From: Vitrella brassicaformis CCMP3155
Lineage: Eukaryota; Protista; Chromerida
Reading direction: 5' to 3'
DNA length: 22,863 bases
NCBI GenBank assembly: GCA_001179505.1
Contig: CDMY01000766.1
Span: 1-22,863 of the forward strand
Shown here: positions 4 to 17,594 of the stretch, in pieces
Layout of the letters: each line of letters starts with the position of its first letter
Position numbering within the stretch: the stretch's first letter is position 1
Notes under the pieces: model-generated
The model's database searches: none
Seen by the model: the letters and a program-made list of their open reading frames with translations, nothing else
What the model was told of the DNA's origin: nothing
Program-made: the position numbers and the translations under genes

Positions 4-2553
4 ATGGACGCGCTGGACAAGACAGACATTGTTCAGCGACTCACCCACACGGACAGCAACAGCAACAGCGATGGGGACCAACCCACACAGCCGGTACAGT
101 AAGCAGCTGCAGAGACACTGACTGACACGAGCGAAGGGAGGAGAGGGCCTCATTTGACTGTGTGTGTCCAGGTCGAGCCACAAGCTCCACAGCCACAGCC
201 AAACCAGCAGCCGACGCAGTGTGTGTTGAGTCAGAGCCAGAACCACAGTCAGCTGCCCCCGTCGCAGCCCACCCAACAACCACTGCCAAACAACCCGCAG
301 CCCGTCCCCCTCCCTCCTCCTCTCGCCCTCCCCCTCTCAGTCCAACAGCCGCCCGACGTGCCGCTCTTCGCAGCACCAAGCCACCACAACCAGCAAGGGC
401 AGCACAAGAAGCGCGGTCGACCGAAGGGCAAGGCCAAGGGCAAGGCGCACGGCAAGACACAGATCAACAAGAACACCAAGACACGCAACAAAGGAGGTAC
501 GTACACACGCACGAAAAAGTCCATCAGACCAGCCCACACTGCTCTTCTGCGTGTCATGTGATCAATCAGGTGCAGCCAAGAAGAGGGCACCGAGGCCACA
601 AGCACCAGCAGCGGCACTCGTGGCTGTCAAGACAGAGCCGACCGATGACGAGCCGCCACGCCCCACACGAGACAACGACGACGTGCCGTCGCTGTTCCGT
701 CGTCGGCTGAGTGCCACATTGCTGGACAGCGTCGAGTGGGTGTGCGGTGTGTGTGGCAGTGACAGCGAGCGGCAGTCGTGTCTGGTGCTGTGCGAGGGGT
801 CTGGGAGTGCGAGCCATCTGTCCTGCCTCACGCCGCCACTCACACGGCCACCCTCGGGCGACTTCATATGCAACGACTGCGTGCAGGTCAGACAGACAGA
901 CACAGAAGGAAGAAGAAGCAAAGGAGAAGTGCGGCGTCCATGTGTGTGTTTGTGTCTGTGACGTGTCAGCGGAAGGGCTTGGTGTGCGGTGGGAAGTTTC
1001 AGCGTGGCGAGATCTGTTGGTGTGCGGTGCGGAGCGGTGTGAGTGAGCCGTGCTGTGTCGTGCAGTCATCGCACAACAGCACTGACGGCGACACCTATCA
1101 AGTCATCGCTATCGGAGACACGCAACACAACAGGTACACACACATGTGCGTGCGTGGCCAATGGAGGCGCACACACTCTTGTCTGCTGTGCGTGTGTGGA
1201 TGTGTCAGGGTGTGTGCGTCGAGTGGTGTGATGGTGGACTGGGAGCAGGGGCTGGCGCGATGGCAGCGGATGCCCACACGCACACAGGAGGCCGACACAC
1301 AACGACTTCGAGGGGTCAGCGACGCCATACACATCCTCGCCGGCACCAAAACCATACACGACATCATCATTGCAAACAAACCGACAAGTCAGATACCAAA
1401 CCAGACGGAATCACATACGTCCACCGTCCATATGTCTGTGTGTGTTTCAGGTGGTGGCGAGGGGGAGCATCGCATGGACGTCGCGCCACCAGAGCAGCCA
1501 GAGCAGCCGAGACGCAACAACAAGAAGAGACCGCCCTCACGTACACCAGACACGCAACCACCAGACAGATGCATGCCCGCTTGCCAGTATCGTCTCTGCG
1601 TGTGATCCTGCCTTTGTCCATGCATCAGGTGGATTGAGTGTCGTCAGCCCCCGCAGCAACAACAACAAGAGGCGTCGCCATCGCGGCCGCCGTCCCCATC
1701 GATCAGACAGCCCGGCAGACAGCCTGATCGACCGGAGTGTCGTGGGCGAGTCGGCCAAGGCACTCATCGCCCGAGTGCCCCCGCCTACCAGACAGCCACT
1801 CTGCCACATCGCATCCACCAAGCCACAGCCGCACAGGGACGGCATCGGGACCCTGAGACGCCCCCCCACCATCATCAAGAACCCAATCACCATCAAGCCA
1901 CGCACACAACAGGCACAGCCCCAGCAGCAGCCCGCCCCACACCCACACAACAAGCCAGCCGTGATCAAGGCCGCGCCAGCCGCCGATGCCGATGCTGCTG
2001 TGCAGAGACAGAGCAAGAAGCCATCGCAGCCACGGCCACCCATCAACAAGAATGACCACAAGAAGGGCAGAGAGGACGGCAAACAGCACAAACAGCAGGA
2101 GCAGCCCAAGTGAGCCACAGGGGGACACAAGAGATCTCTGTGTGTCTGTGTGTATTGATGTGTGTATTGTGTTGTGTTGATGTCAGTCGTCCGTCGCGTA
2201 CGACTCAGCGTGCCTGTGTGCTGGCCAACCCTCAGGCGTACGTCAACCAGAGAATCACCTGCAAGTGGAAGGACGGTAGGTAGGGAATGATTAGAGGCCA
2301 ACACACAACACACACTGGCCAATATCTGTGTGTTGTGTGTTGTGTTGTGCAGGTGTGTGGCACAGTGCACGTGTGGTTGCGTATGACACCCTGTCGAAGC
2401 TGCACGACATCACGTATGACGACAACAAACAGACCAAGTCCAAAGTCGGACTGCACAGGTCCGCCACAGCGACACAGAGACACAGAGACACAGACCCACA
2501 CCAGGTGCACCTCCTCTCGTGTGTCGTGTAGATGTACCTTTAAAGTGCTGTGA
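4..2553 (+). CDS. Multi-exon chromatin reader: AT-hook + PHD finger + PWWP-like + C-terminal Tudor-like domain (true start may lie upstream of the window)
   Basis: Hand-spliced GT-AG exons: 4-93, 172-496, 570-886, 970-1133, 1209-~1420, ~1450-~1540, ~1629-2109, 2187-2275, 2353-~2458, 2531-2553; boundaries between 1420 and 1630 are uncertain. Motifs: KKRGRPKGK (AT-hook, ~406-432); CGVC...LCEGS...HLSCLTPPL...GDFICNDC (PHD); FQRGEICWCAV...PCCVV...YQVIAIGD (PWWP-like); YVNQRITCKWKDGVWHSARVVAYDTLSKLHDITYDD (Tudor-like). Confidence 0.75.
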
Positions 2554-2588
2554 TGATCAGTGAGGCACGTCAAGTCGACACACAGACC

Positions 2589-2619
2589 GATCAGATCAGA
2601 TCAGATCAGACAGACAGAC
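2589..2619. repeat. Short (GATCA)n/(GACA)n microsatellite downstream of the chromatin-reader stop codon
   Basis: The sequence gatcagatcagatcagatcagacagacagac. Confidence 0.8.
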
Positions 2620-2834
2620 CCTCATGTGCGTGCCTGGCTTCACGTGTGCGTATGTGTTTCGTGAGGTGAGGCAGACAGACAGACCTGATTGGTTGATGTT
2701 ATCCAATGCATTGACGCATACACAGGTGGACACGACTACATGCATGATCGAAGGGATGGACGACCGTGCATCGCATAATAAAGATGTCTTTCCACGATAT
2801 ACCAAACGTCATAATTAACGCATTCACGACTCGC

Positions 2835-5282
<2,448 letters not shown>

Positions 5283-5377
5283 CGATGTGAGTACTTGAGA
5301 CGCCCCCAGCGCGGCCCCCGTCTTCCGACTCGGAAACTTTCTCGCCTGCCCGCGGCCGCTGCTTGCAAGTTGCAACC
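5283..5377. promoter_or_regulatory. Putative bidirectional promoter or overlapping 5' UTRs between KATNAL2 and the four-TM gene
   Basis: Only 95 bp separate the two predicted divergent ATGs. The interval contains two TTGCAA palindromes (5363-5375). Confidence 0.5.
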
Positions 5378-7158
5378 ATGGTGAAGGACGAGAAGGCCAA
5401 GGAGAAGAAGAAGGACAAGGACGACAAGAAGGACAAAGACAAAGATAAGGGGAAGAAAGACAAGGTAGGTACACAAAACCACGGGAGGCAGCGGGCCGTA
5501 ACTGTAACGGCATTACAAGAGAGGGCCCCGCCATGCGCTACGCACAAGGGTGTGATTGGTCAGGACAAGGACAAGAAGAAGGAGGATGAGAAGGTGAAAC
5601 GTCCCAAGGGCAAGCTGACGGCCTTCTGGATCATCACCAGCCTCCTCGGCCTCACCGGCTGCCTCATGGCCGTCATCTCAATCGGCCTACCATGGCGCGT
5701 CGGCGAGCCAATGAGCATATTCACCTCGTCCAAGTACTACACCATATTCGGAGCTCAAGGCAACGGGTCAGGGTGCATGAGACACACCCACAACACAACA
5801 CAATCGCCGGCCGGCTGCATGTTCGGTAAAAGAGAGTGTGCGTGCGTTATTTCTGAGGACAGGTATATGTCATGGAGTCTGGTCGCTCAGCAGACGTGCG
5901 ACCGTTCCAAGCTGCTAGGCATGGGCGGCGGCATAACGCAGATGACCTGCGCGGCCACGGGGCCCATAAATGAGCAGTGCAATCTGGCCTTCCAGAAGCA
6001 CGTCCGAGACAGGTGCACGGGCTACAGGTTCTTCGGCTCCCTCAGCATGGCGGTCAGTGAGGGAGGGAGGGAGCGAGGGAGGGAGCGAGGGAGGAGTGAG
6101 GAGGCCGGCCAGCCTCACAATGAATGGCTTTGGATTCTGGTGTGTCAGGTTGTGGCGTTGATAGGCATCCCAGCAGCGTGTGGGCTGTGCGGCTCCATGT
6201 ACATCTGCATGGGCGGATACGACTCGCCCATGTGAGTCGGGGTAAGTACTGGAGGACTGGACTGGCTGCTGACTGACTGACTGATCCACAAATGAGACAT
6301 CAAACCACCAAATGAGCATTTGTCTCCCTCTCTCTGCTCTGTCTATGCGCGCGCCTGTCTCCCCTCTTTCTTTGTCCAGAGCTGTTTCTGCTGCGCGGCC
6401 ATCGGCATCAGCATCGGCGGGGGTCTCTTCACCTACATGGTGGACTACTACATCAAGCTCTTCCGCACGACGGCCGTCTACCCATACCCCGTGCCGTCCG
6501 CTGGCCCATACCTGTGCTTAGGGGGCGCCGCCGTCACCCTCCTCCCCATTGTGTGCGCCGCATGCGCCGAGCTCTGCACTCAATTCACCATGTGGCGCGA
6601 GCAGTCTGCCAAGAATGCTGAGGTCGGTGTGCAGGCCTGACCGACAGAGAGAGAGACATAGAGACACTCGACATGCGTGTGTGGGTGTCTGTGTGTGTGT
6701 GTGTGTGTGTGTAGAGGTTGGCTGCTGAGGCCAAGGCGCGTGAGGATGAGTTGGCCAAGCAGAAAGAGGGGGAGGCCGGGCAGGCAGCCGCCATGATGCC
6801 ACCTGGTAGGCTCACACTGAGACACTGACGCAGCCAGACACACAGACAGACAGGCAGACATGTTGCAGGTGCTGTCTGTCTGTGCTTGTCTGGTGCTGCC
6901 TGTCTGCAGGTGGGATGCCTGGTGCCATGCCTGGGATGCCTCCAATGGGAAAGGCACCGCCAGTCGGCAGGGGGGGCCCGCCAGGTCAGTCAGTCGTACA
7001 ATAGACAGACAGACACGTGTGTCGAGGCGCAGACAGAGAGCGAGTTGGCTGTGTCAGATTGGATGTACCGTACGTGTGTGTATGTGTATACAGGCGGTAT
7101 GCCTCCACTTCCCCCCGGCTTGAGTATGGCGGGGAGGGGAGCACCTCCCAAAAGGTGA
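5378..7158 (+). CDS. Claudin/PMP22-like four-transmembrane protein with Lys/Asp-rich N-terminus and Pro/Gly/Met-rich C-terminal tail (~344 aa)
   Basis: Exons 5378-5464, 5564-5766, 5863-6052, 6149-6231, 6382-6622, 6715-6805, 6910-6984 and 7094-7158 give 1035 nt in frame. There are four hydrophobic segments. TM1 ends in LPW and is followed by a Cys-containing loop. The tail reads GGMPGAMPGMPP...PPLPPG. Confidence 0.7.
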
Positions 7159-7490
7159 TGGATGGATGCGGGGGTGAGTGACACTAATTGTCTGTGGGAT
7201 GGATACGGACGGATGGGATGGGATCAATGTGCGACACACTGTCGGATCCATCGGATGTGTGTGATGATTGGATTGATGCTGGCTGTGAGTGAGTAAGCTT
7301 CGCTTCCCTCTGTCACGTTCGTTGACTGTACTGCATGAGGGTCCATCCATCCATCCATCGATGTCTCAATCCCGTCCATATGTCCCATAACGTTACGCAC
7401 GCACGCAAGCAACCGACTTCCATCGACGATATCTCTGTACCAATCACTGTACACACGAAGGCTTAGAAAAAGCCCTGCCTCCCTGTGTCT

Positions 7491-7659
7491 TGTCTGTCTG
7501 TCTGTCTGTCTGGACAGGGAGGGAGCCCCTCCCATCTCTCATATCTCTCTCTCTCACACACACACACACACAAGGGGGCAGGCAGGCAGGCAGGCAGGCA
7601 CACAGAGCCCGCCACGTAGGTATGCATGTCTGTGCATCACATAAGTATACTTATCTCCA

Positions 7660-7709
<50 letters not shown>

Positions 7710-7896
7710 GGCGCGCACACAGAGAGGGCGCCCACCCCACACAAGGCGCGTCACGACCAGCCAGCCAGCCAGCCAGCCAGGCAGTCATGCGACCGATATC
7801 GATATCGTACACACACACACACACATGGTATGGCGACACGCAAATGGATAGATAGGATAGATAGATGGCACCAACACCGACACGAAGGAAGGAAGG
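7491..7896. repeat. Compound microsatellite cluster: (GTCT)n, (CT)n, (CA)n, (GGCA)n, (CCAG)n, (GATA)n, (GGAA)n
   Basis: Tandem simple repeats read directly in the spacer between two convergent genes. Confidence 0.9.
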
Positions 7897-8283
7897 ACAT
7901 ACGAAGCGAAGCACACTTTGGCGGGCAGTGAAAAACCTCCAGCCGGTGTCCTCTGGCGGGCGATATATGCCACAAAGCATTTATTTCGCTGGCCATTCAC
8001 AAACACCAGCCAGCCGCCTAGCCAAGCCACGCCTCCACCCTCCTCCCCCAGTGAGCAGACCAGACAGAAGGAGGAAACCAAACCACCGTCCATCCATCCA
8101 TTTTACCCATCGAAGCCGGCGTGTGATACCAACAAACCGCCGGCAGCTTGGTGCCCTCCCTCTCCCCCACACACATCACAGCGACTGCACACAACTGCCT
8201 CTCTGTCTGTCTGTCTGTCTTTCTGTCATATCCCCTGCCTCGGCCTCGGCCTCCCCCGCCCTTCCCCAGCGACACACGCTCAG

Positions 8284-8845
8284 CTAGCAGGCCAATCGTT
8301 CCAGCACCCACCCCCTGCGCATCACTCCACTGAGCTGCCATCGTGCGTTGGCCCGTGTGAGCAGCAGCACCCGCTGCTTGACTCGCGAGAAGCCCTCCTG
8401 GTGCTCGGCCGGCGTCTCGAAGGTCAGGGTGAGCTCGTGCGGCCGGTGCACGCGATCCACGGCCACGTGCAGCAGCTCGTAGCCAGGGGGGCGGGTGGTG
8501 CTCCGGCTGAAGGTCATGACGCCACTCGCTGACACCCCCTCGCACAGCTGCTCCGCCGCGTTGCAAGCAGTGTACGCCTGCACAGACCACACACTCACAG
8601 GGGTCGTTGCACAGGCGCTCTGCCTCCCTCTCTCTTGGCTTGTTTACGATTGCCTGATTGTGCAGGTGTTGTCCTTTGGCGAGGCGCGACTTGAGGACCG
8701 ACCCTGCGTCATTGGTGAAGGCCTTGCACACCGACAGGAGGTCCCGCAGCGAGGCGGTGGAGGTGCAGGGGAGGGCGAGGTACACATAGAGGGGCGACGA
8801 GGGCACGGGGGGTAATGACGGGTGGTGCACCAGGCTGTCAGACAT
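8284..8845 (-). CDS. Small hypothetical protein, probably two exons (~165 aa)
   Basis: ATG at 8845 (MSDSLVHH...). A gtaaac...gtgcag intron (~8580-8645) joins in phase 0 to AYTACNAAEQLCEG...VLERLAC*. Codon usage is GC3-rich like the neighbouring genes. No recognisable domain. Confidence 0.55.
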
Positions 8846-9193
8846 ACACGGCGCGCCTCTCTTCCAGATCGTAAGGGCTTAGCTTGCAGACTGCCCCCAA
8901 AATCCGGGCTCGCCTCTTTCGGCCCCAAATCTTGCCCAGTTTTTCTTTTTTCGCCTTTATCGCGCTTGAATAAAGGCTTCCGCGATAGCTGCAGTAATAT
9001 CCCACACACCACAGTTCGTACGCGCCCTTCCTGCGTCTTTGATTGTCTCAGCTGGCGTCTCATTTGCTCGGCGACGCGCTATTGGCGACGCGGCACCCTG
9101 GCTGCCCACCTCTACCGCTGGCTAGCGCTCATCACATTCACCCTTGTCATCGCCGGCAATGCCGCATTCTCTGCAGTGCTGTCCTTGACCATC
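8846..9193. promoter_or_regulatory. Putative bidirectional promoter between the orphan gene and the SAM-domain gene
   Basis: 348-bp divergent spacer containing the T-rich tract gtttttcttttttcg and aataaa (~8940-8975), which is unusual against the GC-rich background. Confidence 0.4.
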
Positions 9194-12100
9194 ATGTCGT
9201 CGAGTAGCAAACGGTGCGGCAATAAGAAGACCGTTCTCGTCAGCTTTGGGGGCGGGGGTTCCTCGGCACAGCACACCAGTGCCGCAGCGTTCCCCATCGA
9301 CTACGTCTCGTCCGTCCCCCATGTCCCCCTGCAGCCGCCACCGTCGTCCTTCCTGTCCACGGCTGAGACGAAGCGCAAGTCGTCCTCTCACCAGAGTGGC
9401 GCTGTCCCCCCCGCCCCGCCCCGGCTGGTGGACTGCATCAGCTGGCCGACACTCGACAAGACCGAGACGTCCGCACGGAAACCTTCCCAGCAGCAGCAGC
9501 AGCAGGCCAATAGAGGGGATGACAATGACAATAAGCCACAGCAGCAGACCCAGCGGCAGCAGCGGGGAGGGGCAGGGGGAGACAAGAGTTCTGTGTCTCG
9601 GGATGCGTCGGTGTCTGCGGGGGATAATAACGGTGACCTGGAGGGGCGGATGCAGGCGTGGGGGGTGCGGTGTTCGCTGGAGGACTGGATGAGGATGCGC
9701 AACCTGCCCGCACTGCCGGCGGGGATCGACAAGGTGTCGGAGTCAGTCCAGCAGCACATTCTCAGGAACTGGCCACTCATCGTCCGGTAGGCACACGGCA
9801 CACACAAGGCATGAAGGAGGGGGGAGGTAGAGGGAGATGCTCTGCACGTCGATGTGTGTCCCTCACGGTACGTGTCAGGCGTGACGGTACGTTTGAGAGT
9901 TGGAGTGAGCAGATGAAGGGTCAGCGGTCGGCCGATGAGATGTACGCGGACCTGCAGACCTACATCGACGAGCACAGCGTCAAATTCGCCACCAAATGGA
10001 AACAAGAATTCGAGGAATCAACCAGACAGTCCGTCTGCACACCAAACCTCCATCCATCCATCCATCTACATGCCTTTTGTGTGTGTGTGTGTGTCACATG
10101 CAGGTTCCCTCGTGAGTTGGTTGACCGTCTCAGGGCCAAGATGGTCCAGTGGGTGCTCTCGGACCACTCAGTGCGGGGATGCTTCTTCCTCTCGCCCTCC
10201 CGCCTGGCCTACCTGCTCTGCCGTTGGCCCTTCGTGGGGCCTGAGGGGGACTACCGGACGGTGCTGCACGGCCTCAAGACCTCCTGGAAAGTCACAAGCT
10301 CCTTCTACAGCGCTGTGGGCATCGTGGCGCAGGGACGGACGTTGCTGTGAGTGCACGAGACACATGCGCATACTGCGTGTGGCCGAAGGTGGTATCTCTC
10401 CTCCTCTGTGTGGGCGTGTGCAGGCCGGTGATACTGCCTCGCGAGATATTGAGCAACGTCTATGCGATTGAGGACGAGTTTGGCCTGCCTGAGGAGTCCA
10501 TCGTCAAAGTAGGTGCAGTGCGGGGCGGGGCGGGAGAGATGCTTGCACAAGGCACCCTGCTCGCCTTGAGCACACACACACACACTTGCGGATGCAGGTA
10601 GTCAAGTTGTTCCGCATCCCCGGCCACGTGGACCACTTCATCCGCATGTGGCGCAAGAGCGCGCGCGGCGAATCCCACCCACCGGCAGGCCCTCAGCTTG
10701 ACACCCGAGACACCACCGCCAACACAGACACAGCGAACGAGGCCACACATACCGAGCAACCACCACCACCAGCAGCAGCAGCAGCATTAGCAGCGCCCCC
10801 AGACTTGCCGCAGCTCACAGTTGGCGACCATCGCTCCGACCTATACCGCGAGTTTGAGGAGGCCTGGGCGCAGGCGGCCGTCAGGGGCACCAAGAGGCAG
10901 CCGCTCGAGGGAGGGCTTGTGGGGGATATGGAGGGCGTTTGCAGTGGGGGTGCGAGGTTTGTGCCTAGGAGGGGCGGTGGTCCCCTGCTGGCGGGCCGCA
11001 CCGAGACCATTCGGCACTTTGAGGCGGCGGCCAGCCGATTTGCGAGGGAGAATGTGTATGCGCATGAGCCGCTCAGTGGCAGCCTCAAGGAGGCTATTCT
11101 CCTGGGAGACAGGTAAGCCTAGCGTGTGGATGTCTATCGTCTGGTTTGTATCGATGCAGGTGTGTATTGTGTGCCCGATGTGATGTGCCTGCCACTAAGA
11201 ACAGGGGCGAGGATTGTCCTGAGATGGCGTCTCTGCGTGCGTTGGCTTACTCGTGGGGGCTACACGAGGACACCGTGGTCATGCTCACCAACTCACTCAC
11301 ACCAAAAGAGGTAGGTACACACACACCGATTTTCCCGTCCACAGGCCCACACGTACGCGCCCGTTTTCACCGTATCAGATATCGACGATCTTCCGGCGGG
11401 CGGAGTCGCGTGACTCGCGTCTGCCCTCCCCGCTCATCGTTGACTCGCTCACCATCCACCCGCCCCTGACGCCCTCTCCCCATGACAAGCCGGCCCTGCC
11501 GCACTACAAGAAGGAGAAAGACTGGACCATCCTCAACATGGCCAGGCGCATCGTCCGCTATGGCGACGACTTTGACGACAACGAGGAGGACATCGACACG
11601 ATGGCTCAAGGGGAGGTGGGGAGTGAGAGCGACCATCATTACGATCAGAGGCCGGGTGTCCCGCCCCCTGTGCCCCCGCCCGTGGTGACGGAGGAGACCT
11701 TCCCCAGGCTGCTTAATGGCCATGATCGGGAGCTGCTTCTGCTTGACCCCTGGAGGGCGCAGCAGCAGCTGCAGCGGCAGGAGGAAGAGGAGGACCAGCA
11801 CGACCTCACCCCCGAGTATGAGCAGCTCAGGCGCACCCGGGGCTCATTCACCCACCTCTCCGCCCTATACCAGCCACCACCACAAGCACCGCCTGCCCGC
11901 AGCACCTGGTCCACTAGTGGCGGGTTTGCCTCCCTGTATCCCTTCCCCCTGTCGTCGCATTACCCGTGGGAGCACGACGCGGCGTACGAGGCGGAGACAC
12001 AGCGGTGCTCTCTGTTCGCTGCCGATCCCGTCGGCGTGATACGGGCTGCTGGCGAGAGGGGGGTGGTGGTGGGCGGCAAGGGGAGGAGTGGGAGGAGTCA

Positions 12101-12785
12101 TCGGGGATATATCATGGCGGATAAACCTGCCGACGAGGCGCTGTACCGTCCCTTCAGCGTGTCTCGGTGTCACGGCGGTGGCCTTGACCTCAATCAGGAG
12201 GTGCACAAGGCCCACGCGATGATGGTGCAGCAGCAGATGCGGCACAACTACACCCACAGCCAGCACAAGGGTGTCGCGGTGGTCAGGAGGGATGTGCCCC
12301 ACGAGAAGGACAAAGACAAGCAGGAGCCGTCAGCCGTCACAACCACCTCCTCGTCCGCTTCCTTCGTCTCCCAGCAGATGCTCCCCTCCCGCCCCACCAC
12401 ACCCACCCTCCATCCCACTCACCACCACAAACACAGCAGCAGCACCAGAGACAGGACAGGGACAGACGGCACCCACCCGCCACCCCTCATCGAGCTGCTC
12501 CAAATCGCCAACGCCTCCCAGTACCACGGCGTGTTGGCCGCTGAGGGCCTGGACGCCGTCGATTTTTTGAGGCAGGTAGTGAGCGACAGCCAGCTGGCGT
12601 GTCGGTGCCCGACTGTGCCGCGGGAGACGCGCAGCAACATCATGCGGACGGCGGACAAGCTGGCGCACGGATACACACTGCGGATGGAGGCCATTGCGCC
12701 GGCAGCAACGGCCGTCGACACACACACAAGGGAGAGGGAGAGGGAGAAGGAGAGGAAGAGCTCAAGTGCCAAGATCACGCCATGA
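9194..12785 (+). CDS. Large multi-exon protein with an unidentified central globular region and a C-terminal SAM (sterile alpha motif)-like domain
   Basis: Phase-consistent GT-AG introns at about 9787, 10029, 10347, 10509, 11113 and 11310. The C-terminal LIELLQIANASQYHGVLAAEGLDAVDFLRQVVSDSQL...RSNIMRTADKL (~12486-12665) follows the SAM pattern (L..L.L.QY...F.E..ID.L..L...DL...R.KIL..I..L). Confidence 0.65.
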
Positions 12786-13056
12786 CAGATGGGATGGGTG
12801 GATGGAGAGGGGGTGGTGTACCATATGCGCATCGGCGTGTGGCGGTGCCGAGTGCATAGACTGGCGTGCGTGCGTGTGGTTGTTGGACTGAGTGAGTTGA
12901 GTGACAAGACAAGCTGACGGCAGACAGATTGATGAACGAATACGTCTCGATCAACGAACGAACGGCCTGTCGCATTTCTGTATGCATCCATGCACGAGAA
13001 GCCTCTCGTCACACAACAAACAAACAAAACACCACCATGACTGTCCACCCCTCCCC

Positions 13057-15743
13057 TCAGCCAGCAGCAGTAGCCCTGTCTCTCTCCAGCTTCTGCCGCC
13101 TCTCTTCACACAACGCCAACAGACTGCTCGTCGTTGAGTGTGCCTGCGTGGCCATCAGCGGTGAAGGCACGCCATTGACCCCATCCTCCACCGCCCCAGC
13201 ATGTCCATTCTGCAACACGCCATCGCTCTCCATCTCCCCCAGACCAGCAGCATCAGCCATGACCACCGCGGTGCCTTCCGTGGCAGCTGCCTGCTGATGG
13301 CCTCGTTGGGTCGCCGGCTGCACGGTGTCTTCTTTGGCCGCCGGATCGTTGCTGGCTTCGACTTGTTGATCCTCGTCGTGTTCATCTCGACTGCCCTCCA
13401 CATCCCAATCCACAATGCGGCGGACGGCCTCGCCGTCGGACGACAGCTCGAGGGCTGACGAGCCCTCCAGACACTCGCGGATGAACTGAGTGGACACAAC
13501 ACACGACACACACGTGATGCTAAGGTGTGACTGGATGGGCGTGAGGGAGCTGGGCTTATACGTTTAGGTCCTTTGATGGTAGGAGGGTCTTCATGCGATT
13601 GAAGTTCGCAACGAGCTCGAGCGACACCCCTGATGTGAATGAGCACAACAGACACACAGACATCCTTTGTGTGCTGGTTGTGTGTGGCGGCGGTTGGTGG
13701 GCTGGGCTGGGCTGGGCTGCTTACATCCTTGGTCATTGGCCTGTGACCTGAGGAACGCATCTCGGTACCAGTTGTCATCGCAAAAGTAGTAGTGCACCTG
13801 CCGCCTCACCGCCGCACGAGTGCGGTCCAACTTGCGCTCAACCAACCTGACACACACACACAGGAAGGAATGGACACTGTCGATATGGATGGCGTGGTGG
13901 GATGCGGGAGCTGGTCAACTGACTTGGCGATGTCTTGCCCCGGCATGGCCACAATCTCCCCCACCAGTGGATGATGAACCTTCGTCTCCCCACTACTCGT
14001 CGATGCCTCACCACCACCACCACCAGCAGCCGGTGCTGTCTTGGGCGGCGATGCCATCCTCTTGTCCTTCTCCGCCTTCTCCCTTTCCCTCTGCCTCTTC
14101 TTTTCCCTCGCTGCCCTCTCCCTCTCAGATTCGTCGCTGTCCTCTTCGTCGGCATCGATCACGTCATAGACCACACGACGCTCCTGCTGCTCCTGCTGCT
14201 GCTGCTGCTGCTGTGGTTTGTCGGTCACGCCACCTCCGCCTCCACTGGCACTCCCCGCAGCTGCAGCCAGGCGATTAAGCACGTACAAGGGGAGAGGGGG
14301 AGGGAGGGCGGGGGGAGCAGGGGCAGCCTTTGTTGGCTTGTCGGCAGGCTCCTTGGTCTGCTTCTTGGAGACCTTGACGCCCCCCCTGGGGCTCGTGCGC
14401 GGCCGGGAGGTGTGCACAGCCACCTGGAGTAGCTCATCCTCTGTGTGCTCCACCTGCACAACGCAATAGCACCACACACGTGTGTCGCGCTGCAGATGCG
14501 TGTAGTGTTGCCTGTCCTGTCGTGGCTGCGTGACCTACCTTTCTGTTGTTGTAGTAAGATTGTAGCCTGATGGTTCGTGTGTCAAGGGCGATGCCGACGC
14601 ACCGCGCCAGCTTGAAAGCTGACACCTGCGGGCAGCCCTCCCTCAGCTCCAACACACGGTACTTGATCAGCTCACCAACCTGATGATGATAGCGAGCATC
14701 GACACCATGAGCATCGTACACACACACACATGGACGGCGATCCGTAGCTATGGCATGTGGTGTGTGCGGACCCACCTTCGGCGGCCGATTGATGGGTCTG
14801 AAGTCGAACTTGGCCTCATCGCCATCCGCCAGGTCCTCGTCGAGGGCCTCTCCCTCTCCCTCTTCGTCGCCGTCCCCATCCCCATGTCCGTCTTGATCCT
14901 CCACACCCATCTGCTGGTCCGCAGGCCCGTCAGCGTGTTGCGGCGGTGCTGCCGGCATTGTCTCATCAACCACCGCCTCGGCAGCCACCCCTGCCTCACC
15001 ATGGTCTTCCTTCTTCGTGCGCCGCCTGCGTACTCGCTTGTGCCGCGACTCGCCCACTGCCGCTCCTGTTGCGTCCACCTGCTCGTCGTCCCTCGGCCGC
15101 TTGCCGGCGACTGCATCTGGGGGAGGGAGAGGGACCCGGTCGATGCTCCTCTCTGCCTGGCAGTTGTCATTGTCATGTGTCTGTGGCTCGGTCTTGACGG
15201 GCTGCATGGGCTGGGCGAGTGGAGGAGCGGTGACGACCATCATCTCCTGCTCATCGGTGCGGGCAGAGGCGGCAGCTACAGCAGCGGAGTCCCGCTGCTG
15301 ACCCACCAGATGCACCCTGACACTCACCAAAGCCAGAAGGTCATGCATTGCCGCTGTCTGTGTGCGTTGTGCATGTATGTGCCCACCGGACGACGTCAGT
15401 GTCCCGGAGGATGCCCAGCGGCTGTGACGGCGGCAGCGTGAAGCCATCCAGTGACAGATATGGCACACGAGGAGCAGCCAGGAAGCCGAACTGGCCCTGC
15501 AGGTGAGAGATCAGCTCACTGAGCCAAGAGGACACACAACCAAGTGTAAGCAAGCAGTCCATCCATGCTCGTCATGCAGGGCAGGCCCTCGGTGCGGCCA
15601 TCTGCCTTCCTCCTCCATGTGTGTGTGCTGCCTCACCCGATGTTGGTGATATTGTCAGACACGAGGACGAGCGACCGCCTCAGCGGCTCCTCAGTGGCGT
15701 CAAGTGCCACAGAGGCATCATCCATCTCCACTCTCAGCCTCAT
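13057..15743 (-). CDS. Coilin-like protein (coilin N-terminal domain + coilin Tudor-like domain) with a C-terminal La motif (~689 aa)
   Basis: Exons 15743-15637, 15518-15387, 15316-14776, 14679-14539, 14453-13924, 13846-13725, 13629-13562 and 13485-13057 give 2070 nt, all GT-AG and phase-consistent. MRLRVE...ELISHLQGQFGF...YLSLDGFTLPPSQPLGILRDTDVVRV resembles the coilin N-terminal domain. FDFRPINRPPKVGELIKYRVLELREGCPQVSAFK resembles the coilin Tudor-like domain. VRRQVHYYFCDDNWYRDAFLRSQANDQGWVSLELVANFNRMKTL...ELSSDGEAVRR is a La motif. Confidence 0.8.
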
Positions 15744-15923
15744 TCCTCCTTCTGCTACTGCGAGCTTAGCGGCGAAAGAACGATTGAGAGGCGGGAAATC
15801 ACGAAGATCTGAGGCTCCTGGTAAGAGTTGGGTTACCACCAGGGTGCACGCTTCGCCATGTGAAAAGCGATTCATTCATCTGACGACATCTTTTGAATCC
15901 GCCGGATCTTGCTGCAGGGCAAG
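15744..15923. promoter_or_regulatory. Putative bidirectional promoter between the coilin-like and EamA genes
   Basis: 180 bp lie between the divergent predicted ATGs (15743 minus, 15924 plus). Confidence 0.5.
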
Positions 15924-17594
15924 ATGGTGAGCTGGGAATCGGTGCACCCGGAGGCGTATGGAGCTCCGGCAGGGAAGAGGGCATCCGACGACTCCACCGT
16001 CAATTCGGATGAGACCATCTTCGAAGATGCAAATCCTCCGCAAGACGAAGAGCATCCCATCTGCACCCATCGACTCATCGCCATGGGCCACGAGCACGCC
16101 TACTCTAAGCTCTCGACCGATGCTGCCACCTGGGACGACGATCTGGACCCCAAGACAGTCATCCCATCTGAGATGTCATCACTGGCTGATGAGGTGCCGG
16201 CGAAATCGAAAGGAGGCGAGAATGGCCTGTGGGGCAGGGCTGCGGGTCTTGTCTTCTGTGCCATGGCGGCTGTGCTGAGAGCGGTGTCATCTACGCTGGT
16301 GAAGGTGACTGCCGGCAAGACGAGCGTGTTGTATGTGCTGCTGGCGAGGGGCGTGACGGAGATGGTGTGTGGGATTGTGTGCCTGGCGGTGCAAATGGTG
16401 GTGGAGAGGAGGTGGATATCGCCACTCGGGCCGAAAGAGATCAGGCACCTTCTTGTTGTCAGGTCAGCTGCTCTTCGTGCCAGTCACCAATACATTGGTC
16501 GCTCTGTGCGTTAGGAGTATGTGGTGTGTTTGCTGGCTTGTGCAGGGCTGTGTGCGGGTCCTTGGCCATCGGTTTCTTCTTCTTTTGCATATCACAGCTG
16601 CCCATTGGTGACGCATCAGCGGCATCCTTCACGACCCCCATATTCACCGCTTTGGTGAGCGGACAGGGAGCCAGGGAGCGATGATACACTGATGCACGCC
16701 TCCCGTCGTGTGTGGGGTATATCAGCTTGCCTCGTGTGTCCTGGGTGAGCCGTGGACGACCGTGTGCACTTTGGCGGCTATGTGCTCTCTTGCCGGCGTC
16801 ATCTTCATCGCTCAGCCAGATGTCCTCTTCCACCACGGCAGCATCCAGCCGCATGAAAGCATCGTCGGCTCGGCGACCCCTGTGGTCGCTTCCCGGGTGG
16901 TGGCCGTCCTACTGGCGCTGACTGGTGCACTGGCAGGTACGCTCATGTGAGAGAAGAAGGAAAACCCGGCAAGGCACACATGAGTGCCAAGTCTTTTCCC
17001 TTTTGTGTAGGTGGGACGGCATACACGGCGACCCGGCGGATCGGTCCGCGAGTGTCGGCGGTAGTGCTGGTCCTGTGGATCAGCACCATGATAACACTCG
17101 CCAGCACCGGGCTCATCGCCACACTGGCACCCAACGACAGCATCTCCAGTAGCGGGGATGACGGTTTCTCGTTGTATGGATGGCTTGCTGCCGTTGGTGT
17201 GATTGGGTTTGGGGCCCACTGGTGCCTCAATCGGGGGCTGCAGATCGGCCAGGCCGGGCCGGGAGGTCAGCAAGATGGCAGGAGGGAGACGAGGGATTGT
17301 GTCTGTCATGTCGTGGATGGCATTCTCGTGTGGGTTTGTTGGTGTCATTCAGCTTTTTTGATCAATCTGGATGTGGCCTTCGCCTACATTTTGCAGGCAG
17401 GAAGACACACGCGTGTATCCGGTGTGTGCCGGTGTATTCACTGCTATCTCTGTGTCTGTGTGTGTGTGCAGGTGTGTGTGTTGGGTCGTGCACTTGACCA
17501 ATGGAGTCTCTATGGTGCCCTGCTGATTGTGGCGGCGGCGTCGCTCATGATTGTGCAGAAGATGTATGCACACAAGGAGGGCGGGGAGGGATAG
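15924..17594 (+). CDS. EamA/DMT superfamily transporter (SLC35G-like), multi-exon
   Basis: About ten hydrophobic segments in two EamA repeats. Motifs: LLARG, LLVVRAVCGSLAIGFFFFCISQLPIGDASAASFTTPIFTALLASCVLGE, GVIFIAQP, TAYTATRRIG, CLNRGLQIGQAGP and LDVAFAYILQVCVLG...WSLYGALLIV. Confidence 0.9.

Follow-up and report, generated by a model that had tools for sequence, protein, structure and literature searches.

The gene described here lies on the minus strand of contig CDMY01000766.1 (C766) of Vitrella brassicaformis CCMP3155, at positions 15743-13057 of a stretch of 22,863 nucleotides (nt) that was analyzed as a whole and is referred to as the window. It encodes a protein in which coilin-type domains and a La motif stand in a single reading frame, hereafter the coilin-La protein. 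Coilin serves as scaffold in the Cajal bodies of the nucleus, and the La motif is a type of RNA-end-binding motif. In line with an initial annotation of this DNA, eight exons separated by seven GT..AG introns (7 of 7, each 70-118 nt) join in phase into 2070 nt, i.e., 689 codons and a TGA, with four codons (for G, R, K, and W) split by exon junctions. The same model is represented in public databases by the protein CEM32845.1 (UniProt A0A0G4GQX0; P0001 hereafter), which has 683 amino acids and starts six residues later. The in-frame translation of each exon is an exact contiguous substring of P0001, the sole difference being the absence of MRLRVE from the latter, as P0001 begins at the second ATG (15725) and the upstream ATG lies at 15743. 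The annotated protein of a paralogue, which is described below, starts with MRLKVE, and this favors the upstream start (MRLRVE, 15743) for the coilin-La gene.

Read from its 5´ end, the gene begins with exon 1 (15743-15637, minus strand, as are all features of the gene), which carries the upstream ATG (MRLRVE...) and encodes the first strand region of the Coilin_N domain. The core of this domain is encoded by exon 2 (15518-15387), which alone scores 22.6 bits over profile positions 33-73. Exon 3 (15316-14776) contains the end of Coilin_N (to ~15259), a disordered acidic/basic linker, and the start of a Tudor-like domain (from ~14802), and exon 4 (14679-14539) encodes the core of this coilin-type domain (Tudor_Coilin, 19.3 bits alone). 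Exon 5 (14453-13924) is a low-complexity linker with a proline-rich stretch, a poly-Q tract encoded by a CAG repeat (14175-14223, minus strand), a charged K/R/E-rich run, and a glycine run. Intron 5 (13847-13923; 77 nt, GT..AG) joins this coilin-like part to the La part, which consists of exon 6 (13846-13725; first half of the La motif, 32.9 bits alone), exon 7 (13629-13562; the middle of the motif with the F-N-R of the uridylate pocket, 15.7 bits alone), and exon 8 (13485-13057). The last of these holds the end of the La motif (to ~13414), an acidic, alanine-rich tail of 118 amino acids, and the TGA (13059-13057). The order of the protein is Coilin_N, a disordered linker with a basic stretch resembling a nuclear localization signal (NLS), the Tudor-like domain, a low-complexity linker of ~170 amino acids, the La motif, and an acidic tail without an RRM.

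Profile searches were carried out with full-length P0001 (683 amino acids, without MRLRVE) and with the exons singly, and the exon-wise Pfam matches agree with the domain assignments of the full protein. Coilin_N (PF15862), the self-association domain of coilins, matches at the extreme N-terminus (residues 14-93) with 36.5 bits (cut-off 32.9; E = 5e-9), so that the coilin-type N-terminal domain of the initial annotation is confirmed. The Tudor-like domain proposed there is upheld in part: Tudor_Coilin (PF23086) matches residues 246-307 over profile positions 8-70 of 105 (E = 1e-5) and in the order found in coilins, but its 26.2 bits fall 0.8 bit under the Pfam cut-off of 27. The precomputed database annotation of A0A0G4GQX0 lists all three Pfam domains, PF23086 included. 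The low-complexity central linker carries the basic stretches KRPRDD and RHKRVRRRRTKK as predicted NLS; the second of these, already recognized in the initial annotation as an NLS-like linker, occupies residues 165-176 (window 15045-15010), between Coilin_N and the Tudor-like domain. Sequence searches of the PDB with the N-terminal and Tudor regions gave no match.

In six-frame searches of the genome (an assembly of 72.7 Mb in 1064 contigs), Coilin_N was found at two loci only, one of them the locus described here (match at 15359-15526), and of these two the coilin-La locus alone has the Tudor-like domain as well. As the sole locus with both coilin domains, the coilin-La gene is the best candidate for the coilin of this species. 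Its N-terminal RLR presumably aligns with the strand of human coilin that holds R8, and it keeps an RD-x-D motif containing what we take to be the counterpart of the human self-association residue D79. In human coilin, R8 and D79 are the two self-association residues and R36 is a contact to Nopp140 (PMC9556525). The coilin-La protein is probably a true coilin orthologue.

The La motif (PF05383) matches residues 491-548 of P0001 with 62.7 bits (cut-off 37.1) over profile positions 1-58 of 59, and is therefore complete, as had been claimed. Its nearest sequences in the PDB are the La motif 2m5w (1.2e-15) and human La (3e-10), followed by LARP7 (1.3e-8), LARP1 (1.1e-7), and LARP6 (4e-6), whereas LARP4 (~1e-3 to 7e-3) and the ciliate p65 (0.077) are the weakest matches. 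When aligned to human La (1s7a) by HMMER, P0001 is identical at each of the eight positions of the uridylate pocket, a set taken from La-RNA structures and from PMC9705548 (human La to P0001: Q20 to Q494, Y23 to Y497, Y24 to Y498, D33 to D507, F35 to F509, F55 to F528, N56 to N529, and R57 to R530). The motif is of the genuine-La type, with the full 3´-oligo(U)-OH pocket kept. No RRM follows it: no RRM family was found by Pfam searches of the whole of P0001 at E<=1, and exon 8 matches no Pfam family at E<=10. The tail encoded by exon 8 (118 amino acids) contains no F, Y, or I and has a predicted terminal helix.

A La motif without an RRM is not unusual in this setting. Alveolate genuine La proteins consist of a La motif and DUF3223 and have no RRM (Deragon, PMC7928011), and Mlp1 of Tetrahymena binds UUU-3´OH pre-tRNAs without an RRM1 (Kerkhofs et al., PMC9705548). 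Because absence of the RRM is the alveolate norm, the RRM-less La motif of the coilin-La protein can be regarded as normal. The comparison with La and LARP7 made in the initial annotation therefore has to be qualified: the motif is nearest to genuine La, and it stands alone, without an RRM, and is not the La module of La and LARP7.

That the coilin-like and La exons are transcribed together is supported by spliced contigs from three sequencing runs of three studies (X1, X6, and X7), which are RNA-like, none being recorded as RNA. Introns 2-7 are removed in these contigs, with intron-less joints at the predicted borders 13485/13562, 13846/13924, 14453/14539, 14679/14776, and 15316/15387. Intron 5, the key junction of the initial annotation, is spliced out in X6, X7, and X1 (joint 13844→13922, cut +2, with 83-118 nt on the shorter side). 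Both joints that the initial annotation proposed to look for, 13924/13846 and 14539/14453, are seen. Intron 2 (15317-15386) is spliced in X6 and X7, intron 3 (14680-14775) in X6, X7, and X1, and introns 3 and 4 are spliced within one contig. Intron 6 is absent as well, as neighboring contig pieces stop at 13629 and restart at 13727. One contig of 1000 nt runs from exon 5 (14174) through exons 6, 7, and 8 to 12963, another of 638 nt from exon 3 (15005) through exon 4 into exon 5 (14224), and the second X1 contig covers exons 5-7 and has a loose 12-nt end that matches the start of exon 8. A retrocopy was considered as the origin of the spliced contigs and rejected, as exons 4 and 6 are each present in a single copy in the genome.

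An alternative to one gene would be that neighboring coilin-like and La genes have been misjoined by annotation or assembly. In its favor, contigs are no proof of a single molecule, and the CAG repeat (14175-14223) is where both RNA contigs end; furthermore, an internal Met lies downstream of this repeat, and part of intron 5 seems to be retained in one contig of X7 (loose end 13850). However, in contigs of three runs, 253 nt of exon 5 are continuous with exons 6, 7, and 8, and in other contigs the upstream part of this open exon is linked to the Tudor exon. The breaks, which are confined to the repeat, flank it exactly, at identical positions in X6 and X7 and inside the uninterrupted open exon 5, and were flagged as a repeat break by the search program, which points to the behavior of the assembler and not to a transcription start. 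In addition, the La exon lacks an in-frame ATG, as the open frame of exon 6 (13914-13594) contains no in-frame Met ahead of the La motif. The La exons are thus spliced onto the coilin exons and do not form a separate gene. Misjoining is already largely refuted and we consider it highly improbable; the locus is almost certainly one transcribed gene that combines coilin domains with a La motif.

The same contigs give a view of the flanks of the gene. At its 3´ side, the X1 and X6 contigs end at 12963, which is the probable 3´ end of the coilin-La gene, and a 2693-nt X7 contig passes 12600 into a convergent plus-strand open reading frame (ORF; 11253-12785; no Pfam match), which suggests overlapping 3´ ends or read-through. 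At its 5´ side lies a divergent plus-strand neighbor (window 15746-16200), the 5´ exon of which ends at 15819 and is followed by a GT..AG intron (15820-15916) present in X6 and X1; its ATG is near 15925. This neighbor and the coilin-La gene are arranged head-to-head, their 5´ ends being tens of bases apart or overlapping. An ORF further downstream in the neighbor (16947-17591) has a weak EamA transporter match.

The second Coilin_N locus belongs to a paralogue of the coilin head, CEM16866.1 (793 amino acids, contig C486). Its first ~197 amino acids are common to the coilin-La protein (86% identity) and are followed by an unrelated region of ~600 amino acids with a weak ATPase_2 match and no Tudor-like domain. 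The duplication is visible at the DNA level, between window 15781-14949 and C486:16803-17627, and comprises 38 nt upstream of the ATG, exon 1, intron 1, exon 2, intron 2, and two thirds of exon 3. Between the two copies the Coilin_N exons are 97% identical, in contrast to 76-80% for the introns. This difference indicates purifying selection, and both heads look selected. The presence of paralogue-specific variants in an X7 contig suggests that the paralogue is transcribed. As a separate observation, run X8 looks genomic, with contigs that contain introns; one of these differs near 15009-15017 by two substitutions and an insertion of 3 nt, and may derive from the paralogue or from an allele.

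A head that is shared by two proteins with otherwise unrelated regions, and that was duplicated as DNA, could be read as a mobile ubiquitin-like header attached to varied effector tails (Tudor plus La in one case, an NTPase-type region in the other) and not as part of a coilin orthologue. On the other hand, its Coilin_N match lies above the Pfam cut-off, no Crinkler or other header family was found at E<=1, and a coilin-specific Tudor-like domain is present in the same protein. Copying of the head from the coilin-La gene to the paralogue would be the simplest history. We regard the mobile header as an improbable explanation.

Vitrella also has a standard alveolate La gene, on the plus strand of contig C455; its La motif occupies 13404-13684 and its DUF3223 15168-15251. 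In the genome, DUF3223 (PF11523) was found only on this contig, beside the other La motif, and on contig C1052, and none lies in the window. Because a separate gene with La and DUF3223 exists, the coilin-La gene is to be seen as an additional La-motif gene and not as the general La of the organism. Over the two La-motif exons of the C455 gene, the stretches that align with the coilin-fused La are ~30-45% identical. A shared intron position was considered as a sign of recent paralogy of the two La genes and rejected, as the introns are 4 nt apart and in different phases. At the position aligned to F55 of human La, the C455 motif apparently has no phenylalanine, and the coilin-fused La is the more canonical of the two there.

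An alternative is that the product is functionally a La-related protein, i.e., a lineage-specific LARP, possibly with a LARP7-like role, in which the coilin domains would only oligomerize or dock and would build no Cajal-body-like scaffold. La is the strongest and best conserved domain of the protein (62.7 bits, intact pocket), UniRef names the protein by it, and the RG box of coilin is absent. Moreover, six-frame genome searches, which are insensitive, revealed two La-motif loci only and neither an xRRM of the LARP7 type nor a HEAT domain of the LARP1 type. However, the protein matches two coilin-specific profiles, which follow each other in canonical order and are separated by a basic linker, at the only locus in the genome with this pair, and without an RRM or xRRM it is unlike LARP7. 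For these reasons we find a role as a LARP without scaffold function rather unlikely, and prefer to view the protein as a coilin that has gained a La motif.

Homology searches by word index, made with the full protein, its N-terminal region, and its La region, retrieved only the coilin-La protein and its paralogue; as the last of these scored just 131 candidates, such negatives carry little weight. A metagenome scan found no relative. A search of 1.84 billion representative proteins with exon 5 recovered P0001, the gene's own product, as its only match, the low-complexity query making this result uninformative on orthologues. In the ESM Atlas, coilin and La clusters are separate and none holds both, with TM-scores that are all low and coverage of clusters with at least 50 members only. 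The coilin-La architecture may therefore be restricted to the Vitrella lineage. In the literature, full-text searches revealed neither a paper in which one protein combines coilin with a La motif nor any citation of these accessions, in agreement with the initial annotation, which knew of no described protein with this architecture. The LARP survey of Deragon (PMC7928011) mentions neither coilin nor Vitrella, and according to a 2024 paper (PMC11347179) no unicellular orthologue of coilin had been reported before Mug174 of fission yeast. The coilin-La protein is thus undescribed, yet it is already in public databases with its three Pfam domains precomputed.

The explanation we favor, and hold to be somewhat better than an even bet, is that of one expressed coilin-family gene extended by a La motif, the product of which would act as a coilin scaffold and recruit U-tailed small RNAs by its own La motif. 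The N-terminal ubiquitin-like domain would multimerize and so give rise to Cajal-body-like nuclear condensates, and the La motif would bring U-tailed RNAs into this scaffold, e.g., nascent transcripts of RNA polymerase III (U6) or telomerase RNA. The multivalency that results from oligomerization might compensate for the missing RRM1. It is conceivable, but a tentative proposal, that RNAs with U-rich 3´ ends are bound by the La motif inside a nuclear body. More speculative still is the full statement that the only coilin orthologue of Vitrella carries a genuine-La-type, U-3´OH-binding La motif, by means of which a Cajal-body scaffold captures U-tailed small RNAs (U6, telomerase RNA). The initial annotation put forward a ´Rosetta-stone´ fusion that would tie Cajal-body assembly to the binding of small RNAs, and this, too, is an inference.

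Several results count against this explanation and have to be weighed with it. The searches, which were insensitive or had the linker as query, yielded no orthologue of this architecture that would show the fusion to be conserved. Tudor_Coilin scores just under its cut-off, and the residue that presumably aligns with R36 of human coilin differs from it. An RG box is missing, as P0001 contains no run of RG repeats; this box (dimethylarginine, SMN binding) is a feature of vertebrate coilin and is not known to be universal among coilins. Single-sequence AlphaFold2 models were uninformative: the Tudor region had a mean predicted local distance difference test score (pLDDT) of 54, and the region of La and tail a mean of 45, with not even the La motif folded. 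None of the RNA-like contigs shows a single molecule that spans the CAG repeat, and in the RNA-like runs exon 1 and the intron 1 junction are at zero depth. That exon 1 is coding is indicated indirectly by its 97% identity to the exon of the paralogue, as opposed to 76% for intron 1, and by the rise of the Coilin_N score from 22.6 bits with exon 2 alone to 36.5 bits with the full protein. As to RNA binding, the La motif of Mlp1 in isolation lost its affinity for uridylates and required the adjoining region (PMC9705548), and in the coilin-La protein the region adjoining the La motif looks disordered.

The gene may be of wider interest, although its value is limited by a basis of one protein in one species for which no orthologues were found. 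What coilin does at the molecular level is a matter of continuing debate, and apart from animals, plants, and one yeast there is scarcely any record of it. Its natural fusion to a La motif in which the oligo(U)-3´OH pocket is intact leads to the testable hypothesis that the scaffold engages U-tailed small RNAs directly. If the assignment is true, this would be the first alveolate coilin, and the family would extend to the group that includes the apicomplexan parasites. A natural fusion would also predict a direct functional link between coilin and La or LARP7 in organisms in which they are separate proteins. For the La-related proteins, it would add a new architecture in a lineage known for RRM-less La proteins.

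Compared with known coilins (human COIL, Arabidopsis coilin, and fission-yeast Mug174), the coilin-La protein has the same elements in the same order, i.e., a ubiquitin-like Coilin_N domain, a central part that is disordered and contains basic stretches resembling NLS, and a predicted Tudor-like domain. In contrast to these proteins, which end near the Tudor-like domain, it runs on for ~380 amino acids with a linker, the La motif, and an acidic tail; it also differs in its lack of an RG box, in its marginal Tudor score, and in its host, a unicellular alveolate. LARP7 and the ciliate telomerase protein p65 represent a nuclear class of La-motif proteins that bind the U-rich 3´ ends of RNA polymerase III transcripts (7SK, U6, and telomerase RNA). 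The La motif of the coilin-La protein matches that of human LARP7 (1.3e-8). However, LARP7 has no coilin domains, and the coilin-La protein has neither an RRM1 nor a C-terminal xRRM, its match to p65 having an E of 0.077.

LARP1 is a cytoplasmic regulator of mRNA. Like LARP1 (PDB match 1.1e-7), the coilin-La protein has a La motif without an adjoining RRM, but it has no DM15/HEAT domain and its La motif scores higher against genuine La. The La motif of LARP1 works without an adjoining RRM (PMC11259064). With the alveolate genuine La proteins of the type of Tetrahymena Mlp1, the coilin-La protein has in common a genuine-La-like motif, the uridylate-binding residues, and the absence of an adjoining RRM1 (PMC7928011, PMC9705548). 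Unlike the Mlp1-type proteins, the coilin-La protein is without DUF3223 and carries its La motif near the C-terminus, behind the coilin domains.

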